From assembly GCA_026770705.1 (NCBI GenBank), contig JANJGN010000071.1:2356001-2420000 (forward strand): DNA of 64,000 nucleotides, written 5' to 3'. The stretch's first letter is position 1, and each line of letters begins with the position of its first letter. A model generated the notes under the pieces. It saw only the letters and a list, made by a program, of their open reading frames with translations. It had not been told where the DNA came from and ran no database searches. The DNA is from Isurus oxyrinchus. Its lineage: Eukaryota. The position numbers and the translations under genes are program-made. Below, one piece after another: positions 21,101 through 53,700 of this stretch.

Positions 21101-24100
21101 TTTATTATTCACAATTTTACTGAGAAACTTGGTACCATGAAAGATTTCTATTATTGGAAATGTAAAGTCCAATGACATATTGGAACAATGGGGTTTACAT
21201 TCAGAAAGGGAGAAACATCTCTAAATGAGATTAGGTTATGTGTAAGGGAAGGCATTGAAAGATCTACAAGTGTGAAATGCCTCTGTGCCCCTAATTGCTG
21301 TCTGCAAGAACTGAAGGAAAGAAAATTCACTTTGAATTTAACTGTTCAGGGTATTGTGTTACTTCCTCTGAGGCTTTTTAAATCTGCTTGTTTTACTGTT
21401 GCTTTACCAGAGGAGTAACTGGGAGTCAGATTAATTAGGGAAGCTAAGAATTAGCATAGCAGTAATTTGTAGAACTGTGTATGTGTTTAAAATTATTTCT
21501 TTTACTAATAAATGCTGAATTTAGTTTTGCCAAAACCCTCTCGACCTGGTGGACTCATTACTACTGAATTCAAGGGGAACAACTCAACATAAAAATACAA
21601 CTTGCAAAACAGTTGTGGCAGCTGTTCCAAGTTTACTTTGGGATTTGAGCAGCTCAGCTTTTACCGTCTGCTGTGCCATAACACTATCAGGAGAGGAAGG
21701 ACGGTCCGGGCCTGGTTTCTCGTGAACAGAATAGATTGAAGAGGTGACCTTGGGGAGGTGGCTACGATTCTGAAATATGCTGACAGAGTCGACGCACAGA
21801 GAGAAAGTTTCCCCAGGTGGAGAGGAGGAAAAGCAGAGGCAGAAATTACCCCCCTCGGGGTGGGGGAGGTGGGGGGGGGTGTTGCCTGTGCAGGGTTGGC
21901 AGGGGTGGGCGTGAACCCGATTGGTGCCCCCGATCGAGGCTGTGCCGCCATTTGACGTGGGCCGGACAGTTCGGGCCCGCCCAGCGTGACGGGTGCCCGG
22001 GAGCGTGGGCGGGGGAGGGGAGGGGAGGGGGATTCCCTGAGGTGCCTCGGGGAGATGAGCTTCAGGTTTAAGACACGTCCCCTCATGTGACAGTGCCTCA
22101 TGAGCTGGGACATGCTCATCAGTTTTGATGGAACAATTTTGTGTAATGAAGGAAAACTTCAGGAAAGCTCCTCCGGCCTGCGGATGAGGCTCCATGAAAA
22201 CTACAAAGGATGCCTGGAGGTGAGACGAGCAGCCCTGATCCTTGTTTAAATGACTATTTCAATGTCCTTCACGGGCCTTGGACAATTGGGCGTGCAGGCT
22301 GCGACCCCCGCTGAACTGACATTCGAAATGATGCGCAGGGACGTTGGGACATCCGCCCGACATCATTTCACTGTACGCGAGCAGACCCCACCCACACTCA
22401 CCGAGACAAGAATTCCACCCCCCCTCCCCCCCACCCCCCCCCCCCTCCCCCCCGCCACCCCAGCAGGGACCAGCAAGGTATGAAATCCCAGCGGGAATTC
22501 AGGAGGAATTCCTTTCCCCAGGGCTGGGGAAAATGTGCAATTCAGCAATTATCTCATTGTCTGTGAAGTGATTTGGTGCATGCTTGAGGTGGTGAAAGGC
22601 GCTATAGGAATGCAAGTCTTTCGTTTGTTGATTTGTCGGACTTTTAAAAAGCATTAGGTAGACTGATGTGAGTGGATAACCTGATAACATTGATGGACAC
22701 AGTCAATACATTTAATTATTGATATTAAAGTGAGTATTAGAGGTTGCTTTAGGACTGAACTGGAAGCTATCACCAGGTTATTGAGAATCAGACAGTGTGT
22801 TACAATAAGCTGTGTTTTGTGTTAATATGTAAACGTCACAGTTTGTGTTATTTCCCATTGAGTGTTGAATGTGAATTGTTGAGTAATTATAACACAGCAC
22901 TTACCAGAAACATGAAGCTGGGATACAGGGTAATAGTTATGGCTCGGACCATTGTCAAATTCTATTCTGAAAAAATAAGGTCCTGCATCTTCCCGTCTGA
23001 TGTTGTTTATAATCAGGGAACAGTCGCCATCTTTCAGGTCTCCAGACAGCCGGGTCCGATGGCGGAACCGTGGTAACTCGTGACTGTGATCCTTGGAGTG
23101 AAAGGCTATAGACGATGTTCTCCATTCCTCATTATTAAACCAGACTCCATCTCGTGGCTGAATTTTCAAATCTGTTGGGTAACTGTAATTAAATGGAATC
23201 TGTACACAGGAACCTTCCTGCGCTGTCACCTCTCGTGGAGTGTCGCCTTTCCACTCTTGTGACAGTCCAACTGGGGAGAGAAATATCAATATTTAACTCT
23301 GGATGGTTTGTAGATCCACTAGACTCGATATCCACCCTCTCCATCACTGGGGCACGGTGGCTGCAGTGAGGACCATCTACAGGACACACATGGAATTCCC
23401 CAAGGTTTCACAATGGATTGAAGAGAATCCTGGACACAGGAGTGGACAAGTTCATTCTACATTGGCTCATGGTCCTCAGGACCCTGTTTAGTGAAGCCAG
23501 TCTTCCACCCAACACAGTGTCTACAAGATACACAGGGAAACTGTGTAAACATCTCATCTCTCTACACCGACTGGTTTGAGCTTCAGTTTAACTTTCAGTA
23601 TTTTTAAATTTCCATATTGTGGTTGCTATGGTGAAACTGTGCAGGAAGTGTGAGGGCTGGACTCTCTGTCTATTCTGACTGCAGCTGTGATGTAGTCGTG
23701 GTGGTTTTCAGTAAAATGAAACCCTCTGAGCTCCTCCATCCTCGAGGTTTAGGGAGTGAATTCCAGAGCTCAGGCCCCAGGCAGCTGAAGGCCCAGCCGC
23801 CAATATTGGAGTGATGGGAATCGGGGGATGGTCAAGAGGCCGGAATTGGAGTAACACAGAGATCTGGGACGTTGGTTGGGAGAGTTGCAGGAGGTGACAG
23901 AGATAAAGAGTCAGTTTGTGGCAATGGAGGCATTTCAACACAGTGCTCTGAATTTTATGTTTGTGATGTTGTAGGACCAGGAGTCAGAAAACACAGGGGT
24001 GAACGGAGAATGGGGTTTGGTGTGAGTTTGCACATTGGGTCACTGCTGAATCTGAACCCAAACAGAGCTCAGTAAGAATCTTAAGATTCTGCTTGAGCTA

Positions 24101-24985: not shown

Positions 24986-25204
24986 AACCAGTGAGAAGAT
25001 CGAGGATGTTTTGCGCTCTCAGCAAAACGTTTACCATGTGATGATCTGTCAGCTCATATTTGGGCAGCTGTAGTCATGAAGCTTCTCCATTGGCTCCGTG
25101 GGATTAGACTCCTGCCCCTCACTTCGGAGGCTGAAACTCAGGCGATAAGAGTTCCCAATACAGGTCTCTGGCCTTATGATACATTTCAACGATCCCTGAT
25201 CATT

Positions 25205-27530
25205 ACGGAGGGAGTGCTGCACTGTCAGCGGCACTGTACTGTGGGAGTGCTGCACTGTCAGAGAGTCAGTAATGTGGGAGGGCTGCACTGTCAGAGGGTC
25301 AGTAATGTGGGAGTGCTGCAACATCAGAGGGTCAGTAATGAGGGAGTGCTGCACTATCAGAGGGTAAATAATGTGGGAGTGCTGAACTGTCGGTGGGTCT
25401 GTACTGAGTGGGTTCCGCACAGTTGGAGGGTCAGTATTGAGGGGGTGCCGGACTGTGGGAGGGTTAGTACTGAGGTAGAGTGGAGTGTGAGGAGATATCC
25501 TTTTATGGCAGAGTTTAACTGGAATTTATTTAAACACAATTCTTGTACTGTGTGTTATTGCAAAAGAAAGGATTTGAGGAACTAAGTCTTGTTCCCGTAA
25601 GCCTAAAAATAATTTTCACGGATTTCAATGATTTAGCATTGAAACCTCGCTCTTTGGGCACCAGTCTTGATTGAAACAACTCGCACAGCACAGTGGGAGG
25701 GTGAGTACTGAGGGTGTGCTGCACTGTGGGAGGGTGAGTACTGAGCGCGGGCTCACTGTGGGAGTGTGAGTACTGAGGGAGTGCTGCACTGTGGGAGACT
25801 GAGTACTGAGAGAGTGCTGCACTGTCAGAGGATCAGTAATGAGGGAGTGCTGCACTGTCAGAGGGTCAGTAATGTGGGAGGGCTGCACTGTCAGAGGGTC
25901 AGTAGTGTGGGAGGTCTGCACTGTCAGAGGGTCATTAATGTGGGAGGGCTGCACTGTCAGAGGGTCAGTAATGTGGGAGGTCTGCACTGTCAGATGGTCA
26001 GTAATGAGGGAGTGCTGCACTGTCAGAGGGTCAGTAATGTGGGAGGGCTGCACTGTCAGAGGGTCAGTAATGTGGGAGGTCTGCACTGTCAGGTGGTCAG
26101 TAATGAGGGAGTGCTGCACTATCAGAGGGTCAGTAATGTGGGAGGGCTGCACTGTCAGAGGGTCAGTAATGTGGGAGGGCTGCACTGTCAGAGGGTCAGT
26201 AATGTGGGAGGTCTGCACTGTCAGGTGGTCAGTAATGTGGGAGGGCTGCACTGTCAGAGGGTCAGTAATGTGGGAGTGCTGCACTGTCGGAGGGTCTGTA
26301 CTGAGTGAGTTCCGCACAGTTGGAGGGTCAGTATTGAGGGGGTGCCGGACTGTGGGAGGGTTAGTCCGGGGTTTGATTATTGATTCTGAACGGCGTTTGA
26401 TTATTGATACTGAACGGGGTTTGATTATTGACATTGAACGGGGTTTGATTATTGATTCTAAACGGTGTTTGATTATTGATTCTAAACGTTGTTTGATTAT
26501 TGAACCTGAATGGAGTTTGATTATTGATTCTGAACGGGGTTTGATTATTGATCCTGAAAGGGGTTTGATTATGGATTCTGAACGGGGTTTGATTATGGAT
26601 TCTGAACGGGGTTTGATTATTGATTCTGAAAGGGGTTTGATTATTGATACTGAACGGGGTTTGATTATTTGTGTTATTGCAAAAGAAAGGATTTGAGGAA
26701 CTAAGTCTTGTTCCCGTAAGCCTAAAAATAATTTTCACGGATTTCAATGATTAAGCAATGAAACCTCCCTCTTTGGGCACCAGTCTTGATTGAAACAACT
26801 CGCACAGCACTTCGGGAGAGTGAGTACTGAGGGAGGGCTGAACTGTGGGAGGGTGAGTCCTGAGGGAGTGCTGCACTGTGGGAGGGTGAGAATTGAGGGA
26901 GTGCTGCACTGTGGGAGGGGGAGTACTGAGGGAGTGCTGCACAGTGGGAGGGGGAGTACTGAGGGAATGCTGCACTTCGGGAGAGTGAGTACTGAGGGAG
27001 TGCTGCACTGTGGGAGGGTGTGTACAGAGGGAGGGCTGCACTGTGGGAGGGTGAGTACTGAGGGAGTGCTGCACTGTGGGAGGGGGAGTACTGAGGGAGT
27101 GCTGAACTGTGGGAGGGTGTGTACAGAGGGAGGGCTGCACTGTGGGAGGGGGAGTACAGAGGGAGGGCTGCACTGTGGGAGGGTGTGTACAGAGGGAGTG
27201 CTGCACTGTGGGAGCGTCAGTACTGAGGGAGTGCTGAACTGTCGGAAGGTCAGTAGTGAGGGAGGGATACAGTATCAGAGGATCAGTACTGATGGAATGC
27301 TGCACTGTGGGTGAGTGAGTACTGAGGGAGTGCTGCACTGCCAGATTGTCATCCATGAGGGAGTGCTGCACTGTCAGAAGGTCAGTGCTGACGGGGTGCT
27401 GCACTTGAAAAGGGTCAATAATGAGGTAGTGCAGCACTGTCAGAGGGACAGTAATGAGGGAGCGCTGCACTGACGGAGGGTCAGCACTGAGGAAACGCTG
27501 CACTGTCAGTTCTGAGTGTGGTCTGCACTG
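25205..27530. repeat. 33-bp minisatellite arrays (GGGAGTGCTGCACTGTCAGAGGGTCAGTACTGA family) within a local tandem duplication
   Basis: 11-aa periodic spurious ORFs; the unique spacer at 25551-25690 is repeated at 26670-26810. Confidence 0.9.
26368..26669. repeat. 24-bp tandem repeat (GGGGTTTGATTATTGATTCTGAAC, ~12.5 copies)
   Basis: Directly visible; 8-aa periodicity LIIDSERG. Confidence 0.95.
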
Positions 27531-31434: not shown

Positions 31435-31579
31435 ATCCAACTTCCTCATTTTGTCTCACAGAGACACATCAATCCTTTCTAATTAAACACACAGAGGGAG
31501 CAGCACAGGAAGAGGTCATTCAGCCCAAACAGAGCGTGTGGGCAGTTCCTCCCCAGGCGAGCAGTCGGACAGGTCCTGG
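31435..31579 (+). promoter_or_regulatory. Gene B proximal promoter and non-coding exon 1
   Basis: ACTTCCTC at 31440-31447; AP-1 position reads TGTCTCA; donor CTGG|GTAAGT after 31579. Confidence 0.55.
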
Positions 31580-32029
31580 GTAAGTAACGGAACGATTGGA
31601 ATTCACTTCCACCACCAACACCGTCCTTTGTTGATGTTGTGACTTTATAAAGACAGATTCCAATGATTGATGCCTTTGAAAGATTTCTACTGATTATTGA
31701 GATCTGGGTGTGAGGCTCAAGTCTGTTGTACAGAACATCTTTCTAGCTCAAGGGATGAGGGAACTGCAGAGACATGAGCTTTGGGACGTCCTGAGATAGT
31801 GAAAGATGCTATAGAAATGCAAATCAATCATTGTTTGTCTTACTTAAAGCCTTGTAACTCTCTGCAGAGCACCTATCATCCCACAGAGAATCAAATTAGT
31901 CTGTGAAGACATTGTCTAAAAGCAGTTCTGATCTCTCGAGAGCTGTCGGACAAGAGGTGAGGTCTCATTAACTCCTTTCTCTTTCACAGCTTGAGAGTGA
32001 GAAGTGGATGGAATATCTGGGAGTGGACA

Positions 32030-32069
32030 ATGATCGGGAAATCTTACTTCCTCCTGTCACTTCTCCAAG
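32030..32069 (+). CDS. Gene B leader exon
   Basis: ATG ATC GGG AAA ... CAA G|GTAATA. Confidence 0.85.
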
Positions 32070-34641
32070 GTAATATCATCATCAGCTCGGACAGATTTAT
32101 GTTTAACAGTCTTTGTAAAAGATCATTCTTATCTCTTTATCTCTGTAACCTCCTGCAACTCACCCAAACAACTTCCCAGATCTCTGTGTTACTCCAATTC
32201 CGGCCTCTTGACCATCCCTCGATTCCCATCACTCCAATACTGGCGGCCGGGCCTTCAGCTGCCTGGGGCCTGAGCTCTGGAATTCACTCCCTAAACCTCG
32301 GGGATGGAGGAGCTCAGAGGGTTTCATTTTACTGAGAATCACCACGACCACATCACAGCTGCAGTCAGAATAGACAGAGAGTCCAGCCCTCACACTTCCT
32401 GCACAGTTTCACCATAGCAACCACAATATGGAAATTTAAAAATACTGAAAGTTAAACTGAAGCTCAAACCAGTCAGTGTAGAGAGATGAGATGTTTACAC
32501 AGTTTCCCTGTGTGTCTTGTAGACACTGTGTTGGGTGGAAGACTGGCTTCACTAAACAGGGTCCTGAGGACCATGAGCCAATGTAGAATGAACTTGTCCA
32601 CTCCTGTGTCCAGGATTCTCTTCCCTCCATTGTGAAACCTTGGGGAATTCCATGTGTGTCCTGTAGATGGTCCACACTGCAGCCACTGTGCCCCAGTGAT
32701 GGAGGGGGTAGATATCGAGTCTAGTGGATCTACAAACCATCCAGAGTTAAATATTGATATTTCTCTCCCCAGTTGGACTGTCACAAGAGTGGAAAGGTGA
32801 CACTCCACGAGAGGTGACAGCGCAGGAAGGCTCGTGTGTACAGATTCCATGTCATTACAGTTACTCATCAAATTTAGTAGGGAGATCGCGTGTCAGAATC
32901 TGGTTGAAAGGAATAGATGTGAATCCACAGCCGAAATGGTCTATAGCCTTTCACTCCGAAGGTCACAGTCACAGGGATCAAAGATTCCACCATCGGACCC
33001 GGCTGTCTGGAGACCTGAAAGATGGCGACTGTTCCCTGATTATAAACAACATCAGACGGGAAGATGCAGGACCTTATTTTTTCAGAATAGAATTTGACAA
33101 TGGTCCGAGCCATAACTATTACCCTGTAACCCAGCTTCACGTTTCTGGTAAGTGCTGTGTTATAATTACTCAACAATTCACATCCAACACTCAATGGGAA
33201 ATAACACAAACTGTGACGTTTACATATTAACACAAAACACAGCTTATTATAACACACTGTCTGATTCTCAATAACCTGGTGATAGCTTCCAGTTCAGTCC
33301 TAAAGCAACCTCTAATACTCACTTTAATATCAATGATGAAAAGCATTAACTGTATTATCAGGTTATCCACTCCAATCAATCTCTCCTGTCCTGTTTAAAA
33401 GTCTGACGTAACGATAAAAGAAAGATGTGTTTTTCTGCAGCGCAATTTACCACCTCAGGAGGATCCAAATCCCTTCACAGCCAATGAAATTATTCCTAAA
33501 TTGTAGTCACAGATGTAAAACACAGCAGGCAGTTTGTGCACAGCAAGATCCAACAAACCACAAGGTGCTAAATCACCTAGATCACTGAGGAAATGAAAAG
33601 CCAGTGAACAGAAACCTCTGGTCTGATGAAGAGTCATACGGACTCGAAACGTTAACCCTGGCTTCCTCTCCACTGATACTGTCAGACCTGCTGAGTCTTT
33701 CCAGCAATTTTTCTTTTTGTTTCAGATTTCCAGCATCCACAGTATTCTGCTTTTAACTCCAATCTCTGGTCTGAGCCTCTTCTCTCATCCAGTGTTCTCA
33801 ATTCACATGTCTCGGAGTGAACGTGTATTAAGCTGAGAGACAGAAACACTACTGCCAAAGAGCAAGAAAATCTTTCCTGATCATTGTAACCTCTCAGTTC
33901 TGATATCATCCTTGTAAAAGTGCTTTCTCTTGTGGGACTGTGATTTCTATTTGAACTGATGCTTCACGTTATATTTCTCTAAAAGGATCCATTCTCTGTC
34001 TGTTAGATTTCACAGATAAACCCACGATATTCCCTGCTGAAATTATTGCAGGAAAGCGTGTGGATGTAAGCTGCACCTTCAACACAACGTGCAATGGAAC
34101 AGCAGCACCTGTCTTAACCTGGGACACTCCCACTGACGTACCTGGATCAGTCTCAAACACTGTAACTCAGCATGGTGTCACTCTGACCTATACTTCTGTT
34201 CTGACCCTGATCCCATCACTCAAACACCATGGACACACTCTCAGCTGCAGAGTGAGATATCCATCTGTTTCATCGGAGCGGACCCTCGTACTAACTGTGC
34301 AAGGTAAGAATGGACACCCTTCATTCTACATTAGCTAGAAAGCTCTACATAGTACATTGCAAGATCCCACAACTGCATTGTATTTAGCAACAAATCAATA
34401 GTCTTTAACTGATACAAATTCACCTCTGACACTGCAGCAGTCCCTGAATACTGATTCTCCAACACTGCAGCACTCCCTCAGTACTGAGTCTTGTTCACAA
34501 TGAAATCTTTAATTGTTCTTAGATGCACCACAGAATCTCTCATTTACTTCGCTTGATATGATTAATGCTTCATCGATCAATATAATTGAGGGGTTCATAA
34601 CCATCACTGTGGAATGTGACTTAATGCAAACTTCAACATCA

Positions 34642-34711
<70 letters not shown>

Positions 34712-35619
34712 CAGAAACATACACAATCTCAACTCACACAAGCACACACACACACATGCATAGACAGACACACGTGCGCACACACACACAAACACACATG
34801 AGTGCGTGCACACACACAGATCCTTATTTTACAGAAACATACACACACAAGCCAACACACACATACACACACAAAAACATGTGGGTTCCTTCTCCTCTCC
34901 CAGTGCTGCACTGGAGTCTCAGTATCAGCTCCGAATCTGTGTTGAAGGAAGGTAAACTCCAGATCATCAAGACACTGAACTGCATGGAGCAACCTCCTGA
35001 ACAGTGAATTGTAGATTTACCCCTCAGTGCTCCATTGATCAAATACAATTCATTGCCTTTGAAGCCCTTGCGGACATCCTGAGGATCTGAAAGGGAGTTT
35101 CCTGCATTCTAGATGGACACCTCCACTGGTGGGAGAATGTAACTGCAGTGTGACAGTTTACATAGGCAGTGCCCATTGTAAATGTGAAATAAGTTCTTAT
35201 CCTGAGGGAATGTACCTGGAAATGCATTCAGACATCAGATACAGAGACATGATGCATGGAGTCTTGCTGTGCACTATATTTGCTCATATTAAAATCTTTC
35301 TATGTTTATAGATGCACCACGGAATCTCTCAATTACTTCTCTTGGTGTGATTAACGCTTTATCGATTGATGTAATTGAGGGGAATTCTGCAGTGATAATC
35401 TGCTCTGTCGAGAGCTTCCCAGCTTCTAACCTGACGTGGCGACATCTTAATGTCCCAATGAACAGAACAAGTTCCAACAATGAGCTGTGGTTGGTGATTC
35501 CTCACGTTACATCCAGGGACACTGGAGACTATGAGTGTGTGGCAGAGAATGAACATGGAGCAGTGGAGGGGTTCATAACCATCACTGTGGAACGTGAGTT
35601 ACTGCAAACTTCAACATCA

Positions 35620-35664
<45 letters not shown>

Positions 35665-38357
35665 ACACACATACTCATAAACATACACACACATTCACTC
35701 ATGCACAGAAATATACACAAAGACACACTCACATATGAGCAAACACATACACACACGCACACACAGACGCATGCGTGCATACTCACACAAACACACTCAC
35801 TTGTGCAGAAACATAAACACAAACACATACACACACATGAGGTCCCTCTCCTCTCTCAGTGCCGCACTGGAGTCTTGGTATCAGCTCTGATTCTGTGTTG
35901 AAGGAAGGTAAACTCCAGATCAGCAAGACCCTGAATTGGATGAGCAACCTCCTGAACAGAGAATTGTAGATTTACTCCTCAGTACTCCATCGATCAAATA
36001 CAATTCATTCCCGTAAATCCCTTGGCAAAATCCAGAGGATGTGAAAGTTTCTTTCATTCTAGGTGGACAGCACCTCTACTGGTGGGAGAATGTAACTGCA
36101 GTTTGACTGTTTACATAGGCAGTGTCCATTATAAATTTGACAGTGGAAGTTATAAGGAGGGAAGGTACCCGGAATTGCATACAGACATCAGATACAGAGA
36201 GATGATGCATGGAGTCTTGCTGTAAATTGAGCTTGCTCACATTAAACACTTGATTTGTTTTTAGATGCACCACAGGATCTCTCATTTACTTCGCTTGAAA
36301 TGATTAATGCTTCATCGATCAATATAATTGAGGGGAATTCTGCAGTGATAATCTGCTCTGTCGAGAGCTTCCCAGCTTCTAACCTGACGTGGCGACATCT
36401 TAATGTCCCAATGAACAGAACAAGTTGCAACAATGAGCTGTGGTTGGTGATTCCTCACGTTACATCCAGGGACACTGGAGACTATCTGTGTGTGGCAGAG
36501 AATGAACATGGAGCAGTGGAGGGGTTCATAACCATCACTGTGGAACGTGAGTGTACACAGACTTCAACATCTCTCTCAGATTCAAACATTACACAAACAC
36601 CCTCAAATATACAGAACTAAATAGACACGTGCAGACACACATGTATGAGCAATTACAAAGACACACTCACGAACAAACACACTAGCACACACTCCCCTGT
36701 GGTTTACCTGAGTACTGCACTGGAGAGTTGGCCAGGATTCTGGGATTTGTGTTCCCATTCATATTTATGGAAGAATATGGAAATTGCAAAGTCTATTACA
36801 GACACTCAGATGCATAGAGGCACTCACAGATACTCTCTGCCTCTCCAACTCTCTCTCTCCCTTTAAGAAGCTTCCTGAAAGCTAACCCTTCGAACAATCA
36901 CCGGTCCCAACTCCTCCTTATCTGATTCTGTGTGATTTTGTTTGTGCATCTGAGAGTAAGAGAGAGGTGGAGAGGTTTAGTTAGAGAATTCCTGCTGGTG
37001 AAAAGCTTACATCATTTACTCACCTTTCCAGTGCACATATTTCCCAGTATGTCCAATGCCCCTGTTTATAATGATGACTGCCTATGTAAACGTCACGCTT
37101 TAGTTACATTCTCCCACCAGTGGTGGCATTGTAGCACTTAATTCTTGTGTTTCCCAGCTTTTCAAGCAACTCCACTTCCCAGTTTGCTACACAAGCTGTG
37201 AGTTCATCAGAATTAAATTATTTCTCAAATGATAGATTTGATAATTCATTTTATTGAAAACTTCCTCAGCGCCTCCTTGAAGGGTTTACACACTCTGGGA
37301 AGCAGGAATAGGCTGGATGTTGGGGAGGTCATCTTTTCCCAGAGAGTAGGGATCCTTGAGAATGTGCTGTCAGTGGGTGTGGTAGTTCCTGTTTCTCTGT
37401 CGCCTTCAAGAGGGATCTGGAGTGGTTACTGACTGGGGGAGAGATCATAGAAGTGGAGAATGATACAGCACAGGAGGAGGCCATTCAGCCCATTGTGCCT
37501 GTGCCAGGTCTTTCAATGTTCTATCCAATCAGATCCACTAACCACCACTCCACTTTGCCACCATCATCCTCCTTCAAGTGTTTATCCAATTTCCCTTTTG
37601 AAAGTTCCTATTGCATCTGCTTCCAGCGCCCTTTCAGGCAGAACCTTCCAGATCACAACAACTCGCTCTGTCAAAACAAATTCTCCTCATCTCCACCTCC
37701 GGTTCGTCAATCTTGTCCCTCTGGTTACCGACCCTCCTGCCCCTTAAATACATCGATACTGTTCACCTCAACCACTCCCAGTGGGAGTGAGTTCCACATT
37801 CTCCCCTCTCTCTGGGTAAAGATTGGAACTGTTTATTAAGCGGGGGGTGTAAGTGCGTGGGGGAGTCCATCTCGATCCTGCCCGATTCACACACACGTCC
37901 GAGATGGATTTCCACGCTGCACTAAACGTTTCCAGAATTTTCTACAGCACAATCCTGTACACAGCGATGGAGAGAAACATTGGACAGGGAGTCCAACAGC
38001 ACAATGATCCATTCTCACCAATGTTCCACGCTAAGGGGAAAGTTCCGATTGTCCACTCTTAGAGTGTTTACAATGAAAACATTCATTCCACATTGAATCC
38101 CAGTGGATGGGTCAATATTACAGCAAATGTTGCAGTGATATGAAGCTTGATTGTTCAGCCAGAGTGAGAGATTGAAAGCGGAGAGTCAGTGATGATTTCT
38201 TTCTGTGTGTTCTCTAGACAGTGGAGGAGAGATTCTGCACGTGATCCTGATCCTGGGAATACGAGCTGTGATATTCCTTGTGGCTGTGGTTATCACTATC
38301 GCTGGAGTCTGTGTCTGGGAGAGACAAACAGTGAAAGGAAGTCGACAGACTGTTTGA
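32030..38357 (+). CDS. Siglec-like gene B, predicted activating receptor (L-V-C2-C2-C2-TM with Arg, short tail); about 471 aa
   Basis: Exons 32030-32069, 32773-33147, 34007-34303, 35312-35593, 36265-36546 and 38218-38357 are GT-AG, all phase 1, 1416 nt, no internal stop. Confidence 0.8.
32773..33147 (+). CDS. Gene B V-set exon (VGLS type, divergent B-C and C-C' region, YFFR)
   Basis: CCCCAG|TTGGAC ... TCTG|GTAAGT; 375 nt open frame. Confidence 0.9.
33623..33657 (+). ncRNA. Minimal hammerhead-like motif, sense orientation in a gene B intron
   Basis: CTGATGA-A-GAGTC-ATACG-GACTC-GAAAC-GTT; stem I pairing weak. Confidence 0.5.
34007..34303 (+). CDS. Gene B Siglec domain-2 C2 exon
   Basis: TTAG|ATTTCAC ... 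CAAG|GTAAGA; 297 nt; protein essentially identical to the gene A and C copies. Confidence 0.9.
34523..34615 (+). pseudogene. Internally deleted domain-3 exon copy (93-nt in-frame mini-exon)
   Basis: 189 nt lost between two GAGGGG hexamers relative to 35312-35593; acceptor intact; donor weakened to GTGACT. Confidence 0.8.
34644..34709. repeat. (CA)n microsatellite
   Basis: Pure CA run; a second run lies at about 35623-35660. Confidence 0.95.
35312..35593 (+). CDS. Gene B Ig C2 exon, domain-3 copy 1
   Basis: ATAG|ATGCAC ... GAAC|GTGAGT; 282 nt; IICSVESFPASNLTW...DTGDYECVAENEHG. Confidence 0.9.
36265..36546 (+). CDS. Gene B Ig C2 exon, domain-3 copy 2
   Basis: TTAG|ATGCAC ... GAAC|GTGAGT; 282 nt; 953 bp after copy 1. 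Confidence 0.9.
38218..38357 (+). CDS. Gene B TM/cytoplasmic exon: HSGGEILHVILILGIRAVIFLVAVVITIAGVCVWERQTVKGSRQTV*
   Basis: Acceptor TTTCTGTGTGTTCTCTAG|AC; phase-1 frame gives a long hydrophobic segment with one Arg (CGA 38262-38264) and TGA at 38355-38357. Confidence 0.8.
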
Positions 38358-38479
38358 AGCTTTGTACAGCAACAATCTGGTCAGTCAGTGCGGACAAATA
38401 ACGTGTGATGTTGGGTTAAGTGTAATGAAACTGGTCAGTGTCCTGGTTAGAATCACCTTCGTATCAGAGAGGCATTCCA

Positions 38480-39080
38480 GCACAGTGGGAGCCCATTCAG
38501 CCCATTGAGTCCATGCTGTCTCTCTGTGGAGCAATCCACTCAGTCCCATTCCCCCACTCTATCCCCATATCCCTGTGAGTTTATTTCCCCTCAAGTGTCC
38601 ATCCAATTTCCTTTTGAAATCATTCATCGTCTCCACTTCCACCATCCTCGTAGGCAGCGAGTTCCAGCTCATTACCACTCGCTGTGTAAAAAAGTTCCTT
38701 CTCACATCCCCCCTCTGCCCAAAACCTTCAATCTGTGTCCCCCAGTCCTTGTACCATCAGCTAATGGCAACAGCTTCTCTTTGTCTGCCTTATCTAAACC
38801 CATCATCATCTTGTACACCTCGATCAGATCCCCCCTCAATCTCCTTTGCTCCAAGGAGAACAACCCCAGCTTCTCCAACCCAACCTTGTAGCTAAAATCC
38901 CTCATCCCTGGACCCATTCTGCTCAATCTCCTCCCCACCCTCTCAAGGACCCTCACTTCCTTCCCAAAGTGAGGAGACCAGAACTGGACACAATACTCTA
39001 GTTGTGACCTAACCAGAGCTTTATAAATGTTCAGCATAACCTCCCTGTGTTTGTACTCAATCCCTCGATTTATGAAAAGC
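38480..39080 (-). mobile_element. CR1-type LINE 3' fragment
   Basis: YKALVRSQLEYCVQFWSPH..LERVGRR..LEKLGLFSLEQRRLRGDLIEVYKMM, the classic CR1 ORF2 C-terminus. Confidence 0.85.
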
Positions 39081-39096
39081 TTATTCTTTCCATCAG

Positions 39097-39439
39097 CACA
39101 AACAGCAATTTCCAAGCGGACTCCCATCAGCAGACAGAGTGTAATGAAACATCGGCATGCCTGCTTCTTAATGTACGGAGAGAAACCTGCAACGAGAGAT
39201 TCTCCTTCTTCTCCTCAGCAAGCTGAAACTTTTCCTTATACCTGGTGCTCCCCAGTCCTGCTGTGTGGACACATCATAACCACGGCATTGTCTGGCTGTG
39301 TGCAGCCAACATGGTCGAATAGGAATGAACAGAAATGTGACGTTGCTAAACTCTGTTCTCTGATTGGAATGTGCTTTCTGAATGCTGCACCTTTTTCATG
39401 CTGCAATAGATTGTAAGAAGCGCTTGTGTTATGAATAAA
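39097..39439 (+). other. Putative gene B 3' terminal segment with poly(A) signal
   Basis: Acceptor-like TTATTCTTTCCATCAG; shares the GCAGCCAACATGG... block with the 3' flanks of gene A (5150-5230) and gene C tail 2 (56870-57000); AATAAA at 39434-39439. Confidence 0.45.
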
Positions 39440-39789: not shown

Positions 39790-40920
39790 TCAGAACTGAC
39801 AGTGCAGCGTTTCCTCAGTGCTGACCCTCCGTCAGTGCAGCGCTCCCTCATTACTGTCTCTCTGACAGTGCTGCACTACCTCATTATTGACCCTTTTCAA
39901 GTGCTTCACCCCGTCATCATTGACCTTCTGACCGTGCAGGATTCCCTCATGGCTGACACTCTGACAGTGCAGCACTCCCTGAATACTGACCCCCTGATAC
40001 TGTACCCCTCCATCACTAATGACTTTCCAACAGTTCAGCACTCCCTAGGTACAGACAATCTGACAGGGCAGCATTCCCTCAGTATTCAAACTCCCACTAT
40101 GCAGCTGTCCCTCAGGATTCTCCCCCCCACAGTGCAGCACTCCCTCAGTACTCTCCCTCCCACAGTGCAGCACTCCCTCAGTTCTCTCACTCCCACAGTG
40201 CATTACTCCCTCAGTACTCACCCTCCCAAAGTGCAGCAGTCCCTCAGTACTCACCCTCCCACAGTGCAGCACACCCTCAGTACTCACCCTCCCACAGTGC
40301 AGCAGTCCCTCAGTACTCTCCCTCCCACAGTGCAGCACTCCCTCAGTACTCACCCTCCCACAGTGCAGCACACCCTCAGTACTCACCCTCCCCCAGTGCA
40401 GCACTCCCTCAGTACTCACCTCCCACAGTGCTGTGTGAGTTGTTTAAATCAAGACTGGTGCACAAAGAGGGAGGTTTCAATGCTAAATCATTGAAATCGG
40501 TGAAAATTATTTTTAGGCTTACGAGAACAAGACTTAGTTCCTCAAATCCTTTCTTTAGCAATAACACACAGTACTAGAATCTCTGTTTAAATAAATTCCA
40601 GTTAAACTTTGCCATGAAAGGATATCTTCTCACACTCCTCTCTACCTCAGTACTAACCCTCCCACAGTCCGGCACTCCCTCAATACTGACCCTCCGACTG
40701 TGCAAATCTCACTCAGTACAGACCCGCTGACAGTTCAGCACTCCCTCATTACTGATCCTCTGACAGTGCAGCACTCCCTCATTAAGGACCCTCTTCCAGT
40801 GCAGCACTCCCACATTACTGTCCCTCTGACAGTGCAGCACTCCCACATTACTGACCTTCTGATAGTGCAGCACTCATTCAGTACTGACCCTCACACAGTG
40901 CAGCACTCCCTCAGTACTAT
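39790..40920. repeat. 33-bp minisatellite arrays (inverted paralogue of 25205-27530)
   Basis: CAGTGCAGCACTCCCTCAGTACTCACCCTCCCA units. Confidence 0.9.
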
Positions 40921-41129
40921 ACCCCTGTCAACATGTATCATACGGCCAGAGACCTGTATTGGGAACTCTATCACCTGCACTTCAGCCTCTGAGGTGAGGG
41001 GGAGGGGTCTAATCCCACGGAGCCAATGGAGAAGCTTGATGACTACAGCTGCCCAAATATGAGCTGACAGATCACACATGGTAAACGTTTTGCTGAGAGC
41101 ACAAAACATCCTCGATCTTCTCACTGGTT

Positions 41130-41273
41130 ACCCACTTCCTCATTTTGTCTCACAGTGACACATCCACCCTTTCTAATTAAATACACAGAGGGAGCAGCAA
41201 AGGAAGAGGTCATTCAGCCCAAGCAGAGCGTGTGGGCAGTTCCTCCCCAGGCGAGCAGTCGGACATGTCCTGG
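41130..41273 (+). promoter_or_regulatory. Gene C putative promoter and exon 1
   Basis: CACTTCCTC at 41133-41141; donor CTGG|GTAAGT after 41273. Confidence 0.55.
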
Positions 41274-41723
41274 GTAAGTAACAGAACGATTGGAATTCAC
41301 TTCCACCACCAACACTGTCCTTTGTTGATGTTGTGACTTTATAAAGACAGATTCCAATGATTGATGCCTTTGAAAGATTTCTACTGATTATTGAGATCAG
41401 GGTGTGAGGCTCAAGTCTGTTGTACAGAACATCTTTCTAGCTCAAGGGATGAGGGAAGTGCAGAGACATGAGCTTTGGGACATCCTGAGGTGGTGAAAGG
41501 TGCTATAGAAATGCAAGTCCTTCATTGTGTTACTTTCTTAAAGCCTTGTAACTCTCTGCAGAGCACCTATCATCCCACAGAGAATCAAATTAATCTGTGA
41601 AGACATTGTCTAAGAGCAGTTCTGATCTCTCGAGAGCATTCAGACAAGAGGTGAGGTCTCATTAACTCCTTTCTCTTTCAGAACTTCAGAGTTAGAAGCT
41701 GAGGAAATATCTGGGAGTAGACA

Positions 41724-41763
41724 ATGATCGGGAAATCTTACTTCCTCCTGTCACTTCTCCAAG
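41724..41763 (+). CDS. Gene C leader exon
   Basis: MIGKSYFLLSLLQ; donor CAAG|GTAATA. Confidence 0.85.
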
Positions 41764-44700
41764 GTAATACCATCGTCAGCTCAGACAGATTTATGGTGAA
41801 TAGTCTTTGTAAAAGATCATTCTTATTGAGCTCTGATAGGGAACTGATTCAGCAGTGAGACAGTGTACAAACTCACACCAAGTCCCATTCACCCATCACC
41901 CCTAAACTATCTGACTCCTGGTCCTACAGCATCTCAAACTTAAAATACACATCTCTTTGTTCAAATGCATCCATTGCCTCACACTGCGTCCTTATCTCTG
42001 TAACCTCCTGCAACTCTCCCAACCAACGTCCCAGATCTCTGTGTTACTCCAATTCCGGCCTCTTGACCATCCCCCGATTCCCATCACTCCAATACTGGCG
42101 GCCGGGCCTTCAGCTGCCTGGGGCCTGAGCTCTGGAATTCACTCCCTAAACCTCGGGGATGGAGGAGATCAGAGGGTTTCATTTTACTGAAAACCTCCAC
42201 GACTACATCACAGCTGCAGTCAGAATAGACAGAGAGTCCAGCCCTCGCACTTCCTGCACAGTTTCACCATAGCAACCACAATAAGGAAGTAAAATAACTG
42301 AAAGTTAAACCGAAGCCAAACCAGTCAGTTTAGAGAGATGAGATATTTACACAGTTTCCCTGTGTGTCTTGTAGACACTGTGTTGGGTGGAAGACTGGCT
42401 TCACTAAACAGGGTCCTGAGGACCATGAGCCAATGTAGAATGAACTTGTCCACTCCTGTGTCCAGGATTCTCTTCTATCCATTGTGAAACCTTGGGGAGT
42501 TCCATGTGTGTCCTGTAGATGGTCCACACTGCAGCCACTGTGCCCCAGTGATGGAGGGGGTGGATATCAAGTCTAGTGGATCTACAAACCATCCAGAGTT
42601 AAATATTTGATATTTCTCTCCTCAGTTGGACTGTCACAAGAGTGGAAAGGTGACACTCCACGAGAGGTGACAGCGCAGGAAGGTACGTGTGTACAGATTC
42701 CATGTCATTACAGTTATCCAGCACATTTGGAAAGCCAACCGCGAGGTGGAGTCTGGTTTAATAATGAGAAACAGATTCCCTGGGCTCCCATTGCCTTTCA
42801 CTCCAAAGATCACAGTCACGAGTTACCACGGTTCCACAATCGGACCCGGCTTTCTGGAGACCTGAAAGATGGCGACTGTTCCCTGATTATAAACAACATC
42901 AGACGGGAAGATGCAGGACCTTATTTTTTCAGAATAGAATTTGACAATGGTCCGAGCCAGAACTATTACCCTGTAACCCAGCTTCACGTTTCTGGTAAGT
43001 GCTGTGTTATAATTACTCAACAATTCACATTCAACACTCAATGGGAAATAACACAAACTGTAACGTTTACATATTAACACAAAACACAGGCTATTATAAC
43101 ACACTGTCTGATTCTCAATAGCTTCCAGTTCAGTCCTAAAGCAACGTCTAATACTCACTTTAATATCAATGATGAAAAGCATTAACTGTATTATCAGGTT
43201 ACCACTCCCATCAATCTCTCCTGTCCTGTTTAAAAGTCTGACTTATCGATAAAAGAAAGATGTGCATTTCTGCTGCGCAATTTACCACCTCAGGAGGATC
43301 CAAATCCCTTCACAGCCAATGACATTATTCCTGAATTGTAGTCACAGATGTAAAACACAGCAGGCAGTTTGTGCACAGCAAGATCCAACAAACCACAAGG
43401 TGATAAATCACCCAGATCACTGAGGAAATGAGAAGCCAGTGAACTCAAACCTCTGGTCTGATGAAGAGTCATACGGACTCGAAATGTTAACCCTGTCTTC
43501 CTCTCCACTGATATTATTCTTATTCTTTCCATCAGCACAAACAGCAATTTCCAAGCGGACTCCCATCAGCAGACAGAGTGCAATGAAACATCGGCATGCC
43601 TGCTTCTTAATGTACGGAGAGAAACCTGGAACGAGAGATTCTCCTTCTTCTCCTCAGCAAGCTGAAACTTTTCCTTATACCTGGTGCTCCCCAGTCCTGC
43701 TGTGTGGACACATCATAACCACGGCATTGTCTGGCTGTGTGCAGCCAACATGGTCGAATAGGAATGAACAGAAATGGGACGTTGCTAAACTCTGTTCTCT
43801 GATTGGAATGTGCTTTCTGAATGCTGCACCTTTTTCATGCTGCGATAGATTGTAAGAAGCATTTGGGTTATGAATAAAATTACATTGATTAACTCAAGTG
43901 ATTAAAATGCTCAGCCTGTTCTGTAAATATTTATAGATTAAAATTCTGGTTTTGCTGCAAAATTCTTGGCTCAAAGACATAGCTGCCTGTTGTCACGTTT
44001 TCCAATCAGATGAATTCCTGTGACCATCTTTGTAATAGAAATTTCCAATGTAAACATGTCACATTGTAGCTGCACACACTTGCCAGTGGGTGGTGGAATA
44101 TGAAGGCTGCCTTGCTGCTCAGAAACAGTGAGAAATATTCCTGTTGAATGCGTGAACTTCATGTGTGCATGAGACACAGGCATCAGATGCAATTTTGTTC
44201 AATTGTACAATATTCTTTGGACAGCGCAGCACTGCCTCATTTCAGACCCTCCGACAGTGCCGCAATCCCTTAGTACTGACCCTCTGATAGTGCAGCACTC
44301 CCTCAGTTCAGACCCTCTGACTTTGCAGCACTCCCTCAGTTCAGACCCTCCAACAGTGCAGCACTCCCTCAGTACTGACCCTCTGACAGTGCAGCACTCC
44401 CTCAGTTCAGACCCTCCAACAGTGCAGCACTCCCTCAGTACTGACCCTCCGACAGTGCAGCACTCCCTTAGTACTGACCCTCCGACAGTGCAGCACTCCC
44501 TTAGTACTGACCCTCCGACAGTGCAGCACTCCCTCAGTGCTGACCCACCAACAGAGCAGCACTCCCTCAGTACTGACCGGCCGACAGTGCAGCACTCCCT
44601 CAGTATGACCCACCAACAGTGAAGCGCTCCATCAGTACTGACCCTGTGACACTGCAGCAGTCCCTCAGTGCTGACCCTCCAATAAAGCAGCACTCCCTCG

Positions 44701-47700
44701 CTCCTTATCTTCCAACAGTGTAGCACACCCTAAGTACTGACCCTCCGACATTGCAGCACTTGCTCAGTATTTATCCTCCGACAGCAGATTTAAATATCAA
44801 CCCTCGGAGCCAGGGTAGAAATTTGAAGTTACCAAACAGCAAACAACAAAAGAGAAACAACACATAGTCATGATGAAATGGCCAACAGTTTGATTCTGTT
44901 GTAACACATTGTGTAATTACGCACTCGTTCCTACTGCCTTTCATCATGCCTTTCAGCACCTCTGTACGTTGCAAATGGATTCACAACCAATGAAATAATT
45001 CTTGAAATGTAGCCCTTGTTGTAATATGGGACACACAGCTGAACCCTCACAAGAGTGGAAAGGTGACACTCCACGAGAGGTGACAGCGCAGGAAGGTTCC
45101 TGTGTACAGATTCCTTGTCATTACAGTTATCCATCGTGTCTGGAAAACCAACCGCGAGGTGGAGTCTGGTTTAATAATGAGGAACAGATTCCCTGGGCTC
45201 CCATTGCCTTTCACTCCAAGGATCACAGTCACGAGTTACCACGGTTCCACCATCGGACCCGGCTGTCTGGAGACCTGAAAGATGGTGACTGTTCCCTGAT
45301 TATAAACAACATCAGACAGGAAGATGCAGGACCTTATTTTTTCAGAATAGAATTTGACAATGGTCCGAGCCATAACTATTACCCTGTAACCCAGCTTCAC
45401 GTTTCTGGTAAGTGCTGTGTTATAATTACTCAACAATTTCCATTCAACACTCAATGGGAAATAACACAAACTGTGACGTTTACATATTAACACAAAACAC
45501 AGCATATTATAACACACTGTCTGATTCTCAATAACCTGCTAATAGCTTCCAGTTCAGTCCTAAAACAACCTCTAATACTCACTTTAATATCAATGATTAA
45601 ATGTATTGACTGTGTCCATCAATGTTTTCGGGATATCCACTCCCATCGATCTCCCTAACCCTGTTTGACAGTCTTACATATCGACAAAAGAAAGATTCGC
45701 ATTTCTATAGCGCCTTTCAGCACCTCTGTACGTTGCAAATGGATTCACAACCAATGAAATAATTCTTGAAATGTAGCCCTTGTTGTAATATGGGACACAC
45801 AGCAGCCAATTTATTCACAGGATACTCCCAGAAACAGCAATGTGATCAATAACCTGATCATCTGCTTTAGATGCCGGTTCAGTGATTGGTTCAAATGGAT
45901 TCTCTCCTGCTGGGGACAGGATAGAATTTAAATCTGGCAGATTTCAGAGAAAGTAACAAGCCAGTGTGTCAGGAACTGTGAGCTGCTCCCCCACCCTCAC
46001 CTGGGATTGTCAATTCAATTGTTTCAAAGTGGAAGTGAATTCATCTGAGTGACAGAAACTCCCCTAAGTCTGAAAATAGGAAATTCTCTCCTGATCGTTG
46101 TAATCTCTCAGTTCTGATATCATCCTTGTAAAAGTGCTTTCTCTTGTGGGACTGTGATTTCTATTTGAACTGATGCTTCACGTTATATTTCTCTAAAAGG
46201 ATCCATTCTCTGTCTGTTAGATTTCACAGATAAACCCACGATATTCCCTGCTGAAATTATTGCAGGAAAGCGTGTGGATGTAAGCTGCACCTTCAACACA
46301 ACGTGCAATGGAACAGCAGCACCTGTCTTAACCTGGGACACTCCCACTGACGTACCTGGATCAGTCTCAAACACTGTAACTCAGCATGGTGTCACTCTGA
46401 CCTATACTTCTGTTCTGACCCTGATCCCATCACTCAAACACCACGGACACACTCTCAGCTGCAGAGTGAGATATCCATCTGTTTCATCGGAGCGGACCCT
46501 CATACTAACTGTGCAATGTAAGTACAAACACCCTTCATTCTATATTAGCGGTAATAGGATATAATGTGCAGAGCAAGATCCCACAAACACCACTTGGTTG
46601 AAGACAAAACTGGTCCTTCTTTAATGAGTGATATTGAGCAGGGAGAGCTGTTCCTTGTATTGACCCTTGGGATTGTTTATCCCAACCTGATAGGGCAGAG
46701 GGGGCCCAGGTTGTAACTATCAGTGTGTGGCAGAGAATGAACATGGAGCAGTGGAGGGGTTCATAACCATCACTGTGGAATGTGAGTGTGGAGATACATT
46801 TGTTTGTTTGTTGTCTCCGTGGTCTCCGTGGAGCCATTGGGATCGTGTTGTTTTTAATCCAGTTTTCTTCAATCCTCGCTCAGTCCACGTTATCCACACA
46901 CCCAATTTTTCCTCTCCCTTTCTGTTTTTGCTCTCAGTTTCTCCTTCAATGGTTGTGAGGACAAGGCTGTCAGGTCTTCGTTTCCAATCTCCGTACTTGA
47001 CGACCTTTCTCTCTCTAACTGTCCTGAACAACCCTTTTAATTGCTGAACGTCTCCTCTTGATCTAAGCCACTCATTGGTCTTTCTGTCCATCCAGCTGAT
47101 TCTGAGCATCTGGCAGCATCTGTGGAGAGAAAGACAGGGTTAGCGTTTGGAGTGTGTATGACTCCTCTTCAGAGCTAAAGGGAAGTAGACATGTGGTGAA
47201 ATATATCCTGTCTAAGGGGGGGCGATGGGACAGGTGGAGCTGGATAGAAAACCAGCGATAGGTGGAGGCAATGGAGAGATTGTGGAAGATGTCATAAACA
47301 AAAGGTCAAAGGGTTGTTAACAGTGGTGGTATTGGATAAAGGAGGTGCTAATGGTGACATTAAGCAGAGTGTGATAATGGGCGGACCAGGGTAAGCACTC
47401 TGGAAAGAGACAGATGACCCTCGTGGGGGTGTGGCAGGGGGAGGGGACGGTGGAGGGAATAAAGATCGAAAATAGACTAAAATCTGCGGATAAAACAATC
47501 AATAAAAATGGAAATGAATTTCAAATAATAATAATGAAAATAAGTGGAAAAAAATTAACAAATAAAACAATTAAAATGAATATATAAAAAAAGGGGATCA
47601 AAAAGCAGTGAAGATTCGTGGAGCAAGTTCATGATCTGAAATTGTTGAATTCAATATTCAGTCCGGAAGGCTGTAAAGTGCCTGGTCGGAAGATGAGGTG

Positions 47701-50700: not shown

Positions 50701-53700
50701 ATAAATATTATATATAAATATTACATAGATTCCATCGAGAAAAATTATATATAAATATTACATAGATTACATCGAGAAAAATTATATATAAATATTACAT
50801 AGATTACATCGAGAAAAAATATATTTAAATGTTACATAGATTACATCGAGAATCACGATAGCTGATTTGTGCAGAGCAAGATCCCACAAACAACAGCGTG
50901 AAATTGAGGTGATAATTGATTATTTTAGTGAGGTTAGTTGATACATTTATATAGAAATTACACATATAATTACACATTTAGTGAGGAAAACCTGTCCATT
51001 TTAACAGGTCTGGGTGTATAAGTGACTCCAGTCTCAAACACCAACATGGTTAACTCTTACCTGCCCTCTGAACTGCTCTCCCAGTTTGGGACAAACCAGT
51101 GGTTCAGGAGGAAGACCCCCCACCACCTTCTCAAGGGGAAACTAGGGATGGACAATAAATGTCAGCATCGCCCGAGAATGAGTATTTAAATACTGAGTGA
51201 GTGTATCGCTTCTCGAGATACATCGGAGCATCATTGTAAACCTGTAGTGCAGTAATTAATGGCTGTTTTTACAGGTAGAGACTCCAGTAAATGGACAGTA
51301 GGATTGTTCACGGCTGGGATCATGTTGAGTGTTTTCCTGGCTGGAATCTTCATCTTCATCTGTGTGAGAAAGTAAGTCTGAAGATTTAACTTGATTTTAA
51401 TATAAACACTTGTTTAGGACTAATTAGACAGTTTTTACAAAGGGCCAGCACAGGCACGATGGGCTGAGTGGCTTCCTCCTGAGCTGTGAGATTTTAAATT
51501 CTTTCATCGCATGTGGCTGTCACTGGCGTGGCCAATACTAATTGCCAATCTCTAATTGGCCCTTGAAAAGGTGGTGGCGAGCTGCCTTCTTGACCCGCTG
51601 CAGTCCATGTGGTGTAGGTACACCCACAGTGCTGTTAGAGAGGGAGCTCCAGGATTTTGACCCAGCGACAGTGAAGGAACGGTGATATATTTCCAAGTCA
51701 GGATGGTGAGTGACTTGGAGGGGAACTTCCAGGTGGTGGTGTTCCCATGTGTCTGCTGCCCTTGTCCTTCTAGATGGTAGAGGTCGTGGGTTTGGAAGGC
51801 GCTGTCGAAGGAGCCTTGCTGAGTTGCTGCAGTGCATCTTGTAGATGGTACACACACTGCTGCCTCTGTGTGTTCGTGGTGGAGGGAGTGAATGTTTAAT
51901 GTGGTGGATGGGGTGTGGATCAATCGAGCTGCTTTGTTGTGGATGGTGTCAAGCTTCTTGATTCTGTGCTTTGTGCAGAAGTGATTTAAAGAGACAGTCC
52001 CAGTCATTGGTGTAAGGTTACAGTGGGCCCTGTGTCTGTGCTGCACTGACTCTCTGCTATGTGATAACCACAGTGTGATATTGTGTTATTGCAGGAGGAA
52101 GACAGTGACGGAGGAGAGAGTTTCAGGGACCAGAGACATTGCATTGACCCCTAGTCCACTCTCTGTGATGCGCAAGGTACAGGAGCTGTTTACACTCACT
52201 CCAAAGCTTCAATCTCAGTGTGTAGACAACAAATATCCCAGATTCCCAGCCCAGTTACCCACTGATTTGTACCTGTGGAGTCAGCAATGGTTCAGTATCA
52301 TTCTGTCTCTCTGTTATGACACAGCAACTGGTAAAGGCTGTTGTTTAAAATCCCAGAGGGAAACTTTAAACAACTGTCATAACCTATATTTCCCAGTGGA
52401 ATGTTTGAGATGCAGCTCTAAATTCAGGAATAAGACCATCAGTTCTCGAGATGGGTTTATATCAAACTAAATGAGACATTTATTAATTTGCACAAGTTAA
52501 ACATATGCACATGGCTACAAACTAGTATTATCATAACTTTTTAACAAATTATCAAACTAATCTCCTCTAATACAACCCATAGACTTTAAGCAGACACCAG
52601 GCAAAGCATTTTCACCTCACAAACTCCAAATGAGGTTCCTTTCACTTTGGTTCCTTTGCAGACAGGTGTAGGCTTACAGCTGCTTTGATGTTACAAGCCT
52701 CTGTTCTGCACACACAAAACTGCTCAAGTTATACCCAGCTCTTCTCTTTGAATGTAAATTCTCATTGTATCATCAGGACCTTTGAACTCCATCTCTTCTA
52801 ACTATAAATCCTCTGTCATAGTATCAATTTTATTAGTAATATAAACGTTGATTGGTTTAAAATTTCACGCTCAGGCCTTGAATGCTCTGTTTAAAAATGC
52901 AAATTGCATCTTTATCCCTCAGTTTACATCTGAAAACTACTATACATCAAAATACCCAGACTGGCTGGCTTTAATCCAATTAAAACACACACAGACTAAA
53001 CCCCTATGCGAATAAAAATAATTTCCAATAACATGATATCCATTGATCGCATCATGACAGTCTCTCTCTCTATCTCTAGCTCGCTTTCTTTCTCTCTCTT
53101 TCTCTCTCTCTCTTCCTCTCTCTGATTACAAGGTCCATGTTATCGAGCCTCTACCAGACACTTGAGTGAAGAATCCAAGCCGTCACTCACCAGAGCCATT
53201 ACCGAGGGAATGCAAGACTGACAGAGGGTCAGTACTGAGGGAGTGCTGCACTGTCGGAGGGTCAGTACTGAGGGAGTGCTGCACTGTCGGAGGGTCAGTA
53301 CTGAGGGAGCGCTGCACTGTCGGAGGGTCAGTACTGAGGGTGTGCAAGACTGACAGAGGGTCAGTAATGAGGGAGTGCGAGACTGACAGAGGGTCACTAT
53401 TGAGGATGTGCTGCACTGTCGGCGGGTCAGTACTGAGGGAGCACTGCACTGCCATAGGTGGTTTCTTTCATAAGACATGGGAGAGAGAGTTAAACCCACT
53501 GAGACACGACTGACATTAACGAAGCTGCACAATAATTTAACCCTATCAGTGCCAGTAAATGATGTGAGGATGTCTTCTGTTTCCATTTCTCTGTAGGGTA
53601 AACAGAACGTGCTGATTACTGAGCCCCGGAACACAACCAGAGCCACAACTAGTGAGGGGGAGACCCCAGCTCCCCGGGGTCTCTCTGAAGGTCCAGTGGG

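Follow-up and report, generated by a model that had tools for sequence, protein, structure and literature searches.

The window analysed here, a stretch of 64,000 nucleotides from Isurus oxyrinchus (assembly GCA_026770705.1, contig JANJGN010000071.1, positions 2,356,001 to 2,420,000 of the forward strand), carries a cluster of Siglec-like genes, the middle one of which, gene B, is our main subject; genes A and C flank it. Gene B is an intact, expressed Siglec-like gene composed of a signal-peptide exon, a V-set exon, a C2-set exon, optionally two immunoglobulin (Ig) exons, and a transmembrane (TM) exon, and all of its intact exons are open, in phase 1 and bounded by canonical AG/GT splice sites. 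The TM exon, at 38218..38357 on the forward strand, is a genuine terminal coding exon that places a single arginine within the membrane helix.

Read in phase 1, this exon gives SGGEILHVILILGIRAVIFLVAVVITIAGVCVW-ERQTVKGSRQTV and a stop; its translation from 38220 is SGGEILHVILILGIRAVIFLVAVVITIAGVCVWERQTVKGSRQTV, ended by a TGA at 38355-38357, and agrees letter for letter with the phase 1 translation offered in an initial annotation of the window. It encodes a short stalk (SGGE), the TM helix ILHVILILGIRAVIFLVAVVITIAGVCVW and the tail ERQTVKGSRQTV, and is preceded by a strong, pyrimidine-rich acceptor (ctgtgtgttctctag|AC at 38218). ILHV...CVW, the apolar stretch, spans 29 residues. Its single Arg is residue 11, roughly one-third of the way along from the outer end, with 18 apolar residues between it and a Glu-Arg, in agreement with the annotation's placement of this Arg in the N-terminal third; its CGA codon can be read directly from the sequence and translation at 38262..38264 (+). 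The tail after the Trp comprises 12 residues, none of them Tyr, as had also been claimed. In a six-frame scan of the window the 19-residue hydropathy mean of the TM stretch is 2.95, and higher values are found solely in microsatellite and low-complexity repeats and in one repeat-copy pair (11939/47583). The exon is hidden in the sense that the mechanical list of open reading frames (ORFs) gives only a different frame there (38189-38401), a point that the annotation had made correctly. Searches with blastn and tblastn found no second copy of the exon in the window and no match between it and the uncharged TM exon WTVGLFTAGIMLSVFLAGIFIFICVRK of the flanking genes A and C, near 8254 (-) and 51310 (+), in keeping with its earlier description as unlike theirs.

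Use of the exon is seen in the assembled contigs of four runs (from four studies and two organisms), which were placed on positions 32700-38650 at 90% likeness or better; the joints given here are the best-supported ones, and the signal exon lies outside this stretch. Both the joint between the V-set and C2-set exons (33147 to 34007) and that between the C2-set and TM exons (34303 to 38218) have GT..AG borders and are present in all four runs, the latter with the junction codon GAC (Asp); spliced molecules therefore exist. Record 12 of run X5, a contig of 850 nt, matches the C2-set exon with one mismatch in 296 nt and positions 38216-38379 with none in 164 nt, stop codon included. Because these joints and this record match, with the stop lying within the contig, the acceptor, the reading frame and the short tail are confirmed.

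The same C-terminal peptide is found in annotated proteins of other sharks. With the TM exon's 45-residue peptide as query, HMMER found 10 matches among 1.84 billion representative proteins, in sharks only, and in the sequences fetched (9 of the 10) the match is at the extreme C-terminus, except in P0010, apparently a mis-joined model. The RefSeq labels of these proteins include CD33-like and Siglec-12 (Scyliorhinus torazame), Siglec-13 (Chiloscyllium punctatum), CD22-like (Chiloscyllium and Hemiscyllium), sialoadhesin-like (Rhincodon) and SLAM family member 9-like (Mustelus). A word-index homologue search with the cassette alone returned five candidates, a number limited by the word index and the length window, and a family search with an S. 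canicula protein collected 94 elasmobranch Siglec-like proteins. The cassette is present in 15 of 103 collected proteins, most of the others having an uncharged TM, often with ITIMs (immunoreceptor tyrosine-based inhibitory motifs) after it. Carriers are 61-84% identical to the window cassette over a 31-residue core, their tails are 4-12 residues long and without Tyr, with lengths that vary through shifted stops, and the intramembrane Arg is invariant (15/15 homologous cassettes). The aligned cassettes all keep ILGIRA..IF...G.CV, whether the ectodomain is Siglec-like, CD22-like, sialoadhesin-like or SLAM-like, and the similarity of the CD22-like and SLAM-like ectodomains to the Siglec ectodomain is not significant (E 0.09-1.7). 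This strict retention of ILGIRA in shark families with unrelated ectodomains suggests that the Arg-bearing helix is under constraint, as would be expected of a helix that docks an adaptor.

The 'myeloid cell surface antigen CD33-like' protein of Carcharodon carcharias (P0020) has a cassette identical at 31/31 positions to that of the window in a V-C2-TM arrangement, with the junction ...LVLTVQ-D-SGGEILH, and the window exons in general are 91-96% identical to Carcharodon proteins. The layout V-C2-D/Y-SGGE...LGIR is common to Carcharodon P0020, 'Siglec-12' P0017/18 and S. canicula 'Siglec-13/14' P0012/13. A reading of 38218..38357 as a chance ORF was rejected because of the RNA joints and the identical C-termini of the annotated shark proteins. 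We also note that 'Siglec-10' of the stingray Hypanus sabinus (P0093) has another Arg-bearing TM, SLAVRGVLFLL (ILLISLAVRGVLFLLATVAVIWLV), with an 11-residue tail, perhaps the equivalent, in batoids, of the shark cassette.

The junction proposed in the initial annotation, from 36546 to 38218, requires closer consideration, as it would place two Ig exons before the TM exon. Ig exon 3 (35312..35593, +; I-set/Ig_3 in Pfam) is intact, in phase 1-1, without a stop and with canonical splice sites, and Ig exon 4 (36265..36546, +; donor GAAC|gtgagt) is likewise intact and 94.7% identical to it. The two are the intact copies of a tandemly repeated unit, some 1 kb long and made up of an Ig exon and an intron with a CA microsatellite; the repeats extend over 34523-36600 and include one degenerate, internally deleted Ig-exon remnant (34523-34614, +). 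The acceptor at 38218 is upheld by all four runs, but the donor at 36546 is not: its joint to 38218 is absent from the joints listed for the four sets of contigs, in which the partner of 38218 is 34303, so that the junction observed skips both Ig exons. An alternative is that the main product of gene B nonetheless has the form V-C2-Ig-Ig-TM, with V-C2-TM representing a minor isoform or a near-identical paralogue. The consensus splice sites of the two exons are compatible with this, as is the observation that the 36546 to 38218 splice would keep the frame (junction codon CAC, His). Contigs moreover cover both exons, one (X5 record 13) beginning exactly at 36265 and another (X7 record 26) covering exon 4, a joint from 34303 to 35312 is listed for run X1 only, and S. 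torazame P0002 and Chiloscyllium P0003 join such an Ig exon directly to the cassette, the layout that the annotation had envisaged. We nevertheless consider it the less probable arrangement for the main product, since 34303 is the sole donor to 38218 among the joints listed, in four of four runs, and the closest annotated relatives (Carcharodon P0020, P0017 and P0018) are V-C2-TM proteins. The 36546 to 38218 form is plausible as an isoform, and Ig exons 3 and 4 are probably optional. A four-domain product would alter the length of the ectodomain and leave the reading of the TM exon unaffected.

Beyond the stop codon, the start of the 3' untranslated region (UTR) occupies 38358..38379 (+), at the end of which the match to the window is lost in contigs of both X5 and X6: record 23 of X6 terminates at 38379, and record 12 of X5 continues with 390 further letters that have no placement in 32700-38650. 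A weak donor-like sequence, CTG|GTCAGT, adjoins the break, 22 nt past the stop. An intron in the 3' UTR or a structural variant could account for the break, and whatever sequence follows 38379 is 3' of the stop codon. In another run, 38379-38499 is replaced by 27 other letters.

The assignment of gene B to the Siglecs is supported by its N-terminal exons, the database searches having been run one exon at a time. The signal-peptide exon (32030..32069, +) encodes MIGKSYFLLSLLQ plus one base, in phase 1, with the donor CAAG|gtaata, and the resulting N-terminus, MIGKSYFLLSLLQ-V-GLSQEWKG, matches those of P0012 and P0013, two annotated proteins from S. canicula. The V-set exon of Siglec type (32773..33147, +; phase 1-1) matches the Pfam families V-set (E=1.2e-14) and Ig_CD22 (E=1.9e-9), and its best PDB matches by phmmer are sialoadhesin, Siglec-5, -10, -8 and -7, CD33 and MAG. 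Its cysteines, arranged as CxxxxC...DCSL, align with those of Siglecs (GSCVQIPC with the CxxxxC of strand B, and GDCSL with the Cys of strand E), and its YFFRIE lies opposite YNFRFE in sialoadhesin and YFFRVE in Siglec-5, such that the essential Arg and the N-terminal Trp are both in register. The Arg of YFFRIE is accordingly placed as a candidate sialic-acid-binding residue. The exon that follows (34007..34303, +; phase 1-1) matches Pfam C2-set_2 (E=2.2e-9), so that gene B has a V-set domain with the strand-F sialic-acid-binding Arg in its expected position and a C2-set_2 exon next to it.

Gene C lies downstream on the same strand. By blastn the C2-set exon of gene B is 99% identical to gene C at 46221-46516, as well as to gene A at 13294-12999 (-), and the V exons of genes B and C are 86% identical. 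Following its uncharged TM (near 51310), gene C has a cytoplasmic exon with the ITIM LFYANI near 56737. This exon, at 56593-56838, contains LFYANI and then ...TEY, and is 88% identical to the tail of the Carcharodon 'uncharacterized protein LOC121274084'. Between the TM exon of gene B and gene C, a search for remnants of a C-type cytoplasmic or ITIM exon yielded minisatellite and repeat matches only, and the ITIM-like strings downstream of the TM exon fall inside repeats. Further splicing to an ITIM exon, which the annotation recognized would contradict its reading, is thus not what is found: the stop lies inside the contigs and there is no C-type cytoplasmic exon downstream. Because of the 99% identical C2-set exon and the uncharged TM and ITIM of gene C, genes B and C look, by their anatomy, like a paired receptor set, in which a gene of inhibitory type is linked to one with a closely similar ectodomain.

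The cluster around these genes is rich in duplicated segments. The 5' part of gene B (31437-33678, from the upstream sequence through the signal exon to the V exon) recurs at 41131-43513 as the front of gene C, with 93-94% identity, and a further copy is present in inverted orientation at 24981-22538. On the minus strand, 13666-23270 contains five tandem V-set exons (near 14026, 15905, 17942, 19956 and 23270) that are 83-86% identical to the V exon of gene B, and a V-set copy near 19668 (-) is apparently truncated, reading FTFLVSAVL and then a stop. Of the Ig-exon unit that is tandemly repeated in gene B, genes A (12804-12740) and C (46716-46780) retain only a remnant of 65 nt each. Arrays of a 33-bp minisatellite, which reads ...STDPPTVQHSL... 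in one frame, are scattered over the cluster on both strands, at 39800-40930, 25200-27500, 44200-44730, 53200-53450 and 56330-56490. Just downstream of the TM exon, 38702-39127 (-) is an open 141-residue fragment reminiscent of the C-terminal portion of a reverse transcriptase from a retrotransposon, and a similar copy is located near 43440-43855. At the end of the window, 60000-64000 is a purine-rich low-complexity block with a GC skew of 0.8-0.98, whose minus strand reads as long PLLIPLLI/SSSP repeats.

Receptors that dock the acidic residue of DAP12, FcR-gamma, CD3-zeta or DAP10 are recognized by a basic residue in the TM combined with a short tail. Gene B has such a residue in its TM helix together with a short tail devoid of tyrosine motifs, and the same combination denotes adaptor coupling in Siglec-14, -15 and -16, which use DAP12, and in LILRA2, NKp46, GPVI, OSCAR and FcalphaR, which by the same rule are FcR-gamma-coupled (PMC13358205; PMC7226832; PMC2413239). 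We therefore regard gene B as probably encoding an adaptor-coupled, formally 'activating' Siglec-like receptor. Its product would be a type I membrane protein whose one Arg, at about one-third of the helix from the outside, may pair within the membrane with the acidic residue of a small dimeric adaptor, either DAP12-like or FcR-gamma/CD3-zeta-like; binding of a ligand by the V domain would then trigger signalling through the ITAM (immunoreceptor tyrosine-based activation motif) of the adaptor and a Syk-type kinase, so that gene B would be the putative partner of activating type to gene C, the inhibitory one. A conserved Arg helix beneath unrelated ectodomains would be expected if these receptors had a membrane partner in common. 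As to the adaptor, we lean slightly towards a partner of FcR-gamma/zeta type because the Arg is in the outer third of the helix, as in FcR-gamma-coupled receptors. The earlier designation of gene B as a predicted activating Siglec is therefore well founded as to its Arg-bearing TM, short tail and Siglec-type head, with the term 'activating' and any named adaptor being drawn from the motif class.

Several observations weigh against this interpretation. The Asn three residues before the Arg that typifies FcR-gamma partners (NxxR) is absent, with L-G-I-R in the window and in 15 of 15 cassettes; a 2014 survey did not find an FcR-gamma homologue in sharks (PMC4016189), and our literature searches on shark DAP12 or FcR-gamma found no dedicated paper. 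The 45-residue peptide of the TM exon has zero detectable similarity to PDB chains and Pfam. As regards the transcripts, the RNA nature of the four runs is a tool's guess only, the evidence being assembled contigs; these could derive from a near-identical paralogue elsewhere in the genome, and as they break at 38379 they define the mRNA up to that point.

Some of these same points favour a different view, in which the exon is used and the receptor is a tail-less, non-signalling one with a decoy or regulatory role, its Arg serving a purpose other than ITAM-adaptor docking, such as retention or quality control in the endoplasmic reticulum, association with a non-ITAM chain (of the DAP10 type, with YxxM), or heteromerization with another receptor. 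A tail of 12 residues without a recognized motif (4-12 residues among the relatives), the missing NxxR motif, the reported absence of FcR-gamma in sharks (PMC4016189) and the lack of a documented shark adaptor in the literature found would all be consistent with it. We think it unlikely, however, as a plain anchor needs no invariant Arg, whereas ILGIRA..IF...G.CV is strictly kept across unrelated ectodomains, and an ITIM-bearing neighbour fits the activating/inhibitory paradigm. A more speculative proposal, and one that we hold to be decidedly doubtful, is that the ILGIRA cassette acts as one common docking module for at least four shark families of the immunoglobulin superfamily (Siglec-like, CD22-like, sialoadhesin-like V-only and SLAM-like), coupling all of them to one undescribed elasmobranch adaptor that is not a straightforward orthologue of DAP12 or FcR-gamma, which would fit both the reported non-detection of FcR-gamma in sharks and the missing NxxR. 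Finally, it is very improbable that gene B is a duplicate on its way to becoming a pseudogene in a fast-turnover cluster, transcribed yet non-functional and with a TM exon that has no present function, for although the cluster abounds in duplications, repeats and Ig-exon remnants (34523-34614, 46716-46780 and 12804-12740), all of its exons are open and have canonical splice sites, the spliced contigs have 0-1 mismatches, and the cassette is identical to that of a Carcharodon protein at 31/31 positions.

The design of gene B, if it functions as an adaptor-coupled receptor, is a known paired-receptor design. Human Siglec-14, -16 and -15 are DAP12-coupled, the first two forming the pairs Siglec-5/14 and Siglec-11/16, and like gene B they combine a basic TM residue and a short tail without an ITIM with a Siglec-type V-set head that carries the essential Arg; the pairs further resemble genes B and C in that the inhibitory neighbour has a near-identical ectodomain exon (PMC13358205; PMC7226832). 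Unlike the human proteins, gene B has a TM exon that is similar to shark proteins only and whose cassette is also present in non-Siglec shark receptor families. We do not file gene B as Siglec-14 or claim orthology with any mammalian Siglec, and the RefSeq names 'Siglec-12/13/14' and 'CD33-like' are automatic labels.

A second likeness is to receptors with the NxxR type of TM (LILRA2, PIR-A, NKp46, GPVI, OSCAR, FcalphaRI and TM1 of Xenopus XFL), in which the Arg is also towards the outer end of the helix. As in gene B, a long apolar run follows the Arg in these receptors and the tail is very short. They differ in having Asn three residues before the Arg, where gene B has Leu (L-G-I-R). In them, too, one kind of TM is common to many paired receptors of a family (PMC2413239). 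A third likeness is to the RefSeq models of other sharks (P0020, P0017/18, P0012/13 and S. torazame XP_072325011.1), which follow the same order of signal, V, C2 and (D/Y)-SGGE...ILGIRA...; these are automatic predictions, by which the design is already predicted in many sharks, and gene B is distinguished from them by the two extra intact Ig exons, maybe optional, between C2 and TM.

The pairing of activating with inhibitory Siglecs has been attributed to mammals, and among them largely to primates. Bony fish, teleosts included, are reported to be without CD33-related Siglecs (PMC7226832), and our literature searches on shark Siglecs found no paper describing the ILGIRA cassette or a paired design. 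An expressed shark gene with an Arg-bearing anchor, situated beside an ITIM-bearing neighbour, would place the same on/off design in the cartilaginous fish, and a cassette that is common to several receptor families promises to be a useful handle both for finding the shark adaptor and for dating adaptor-coupled signalling.

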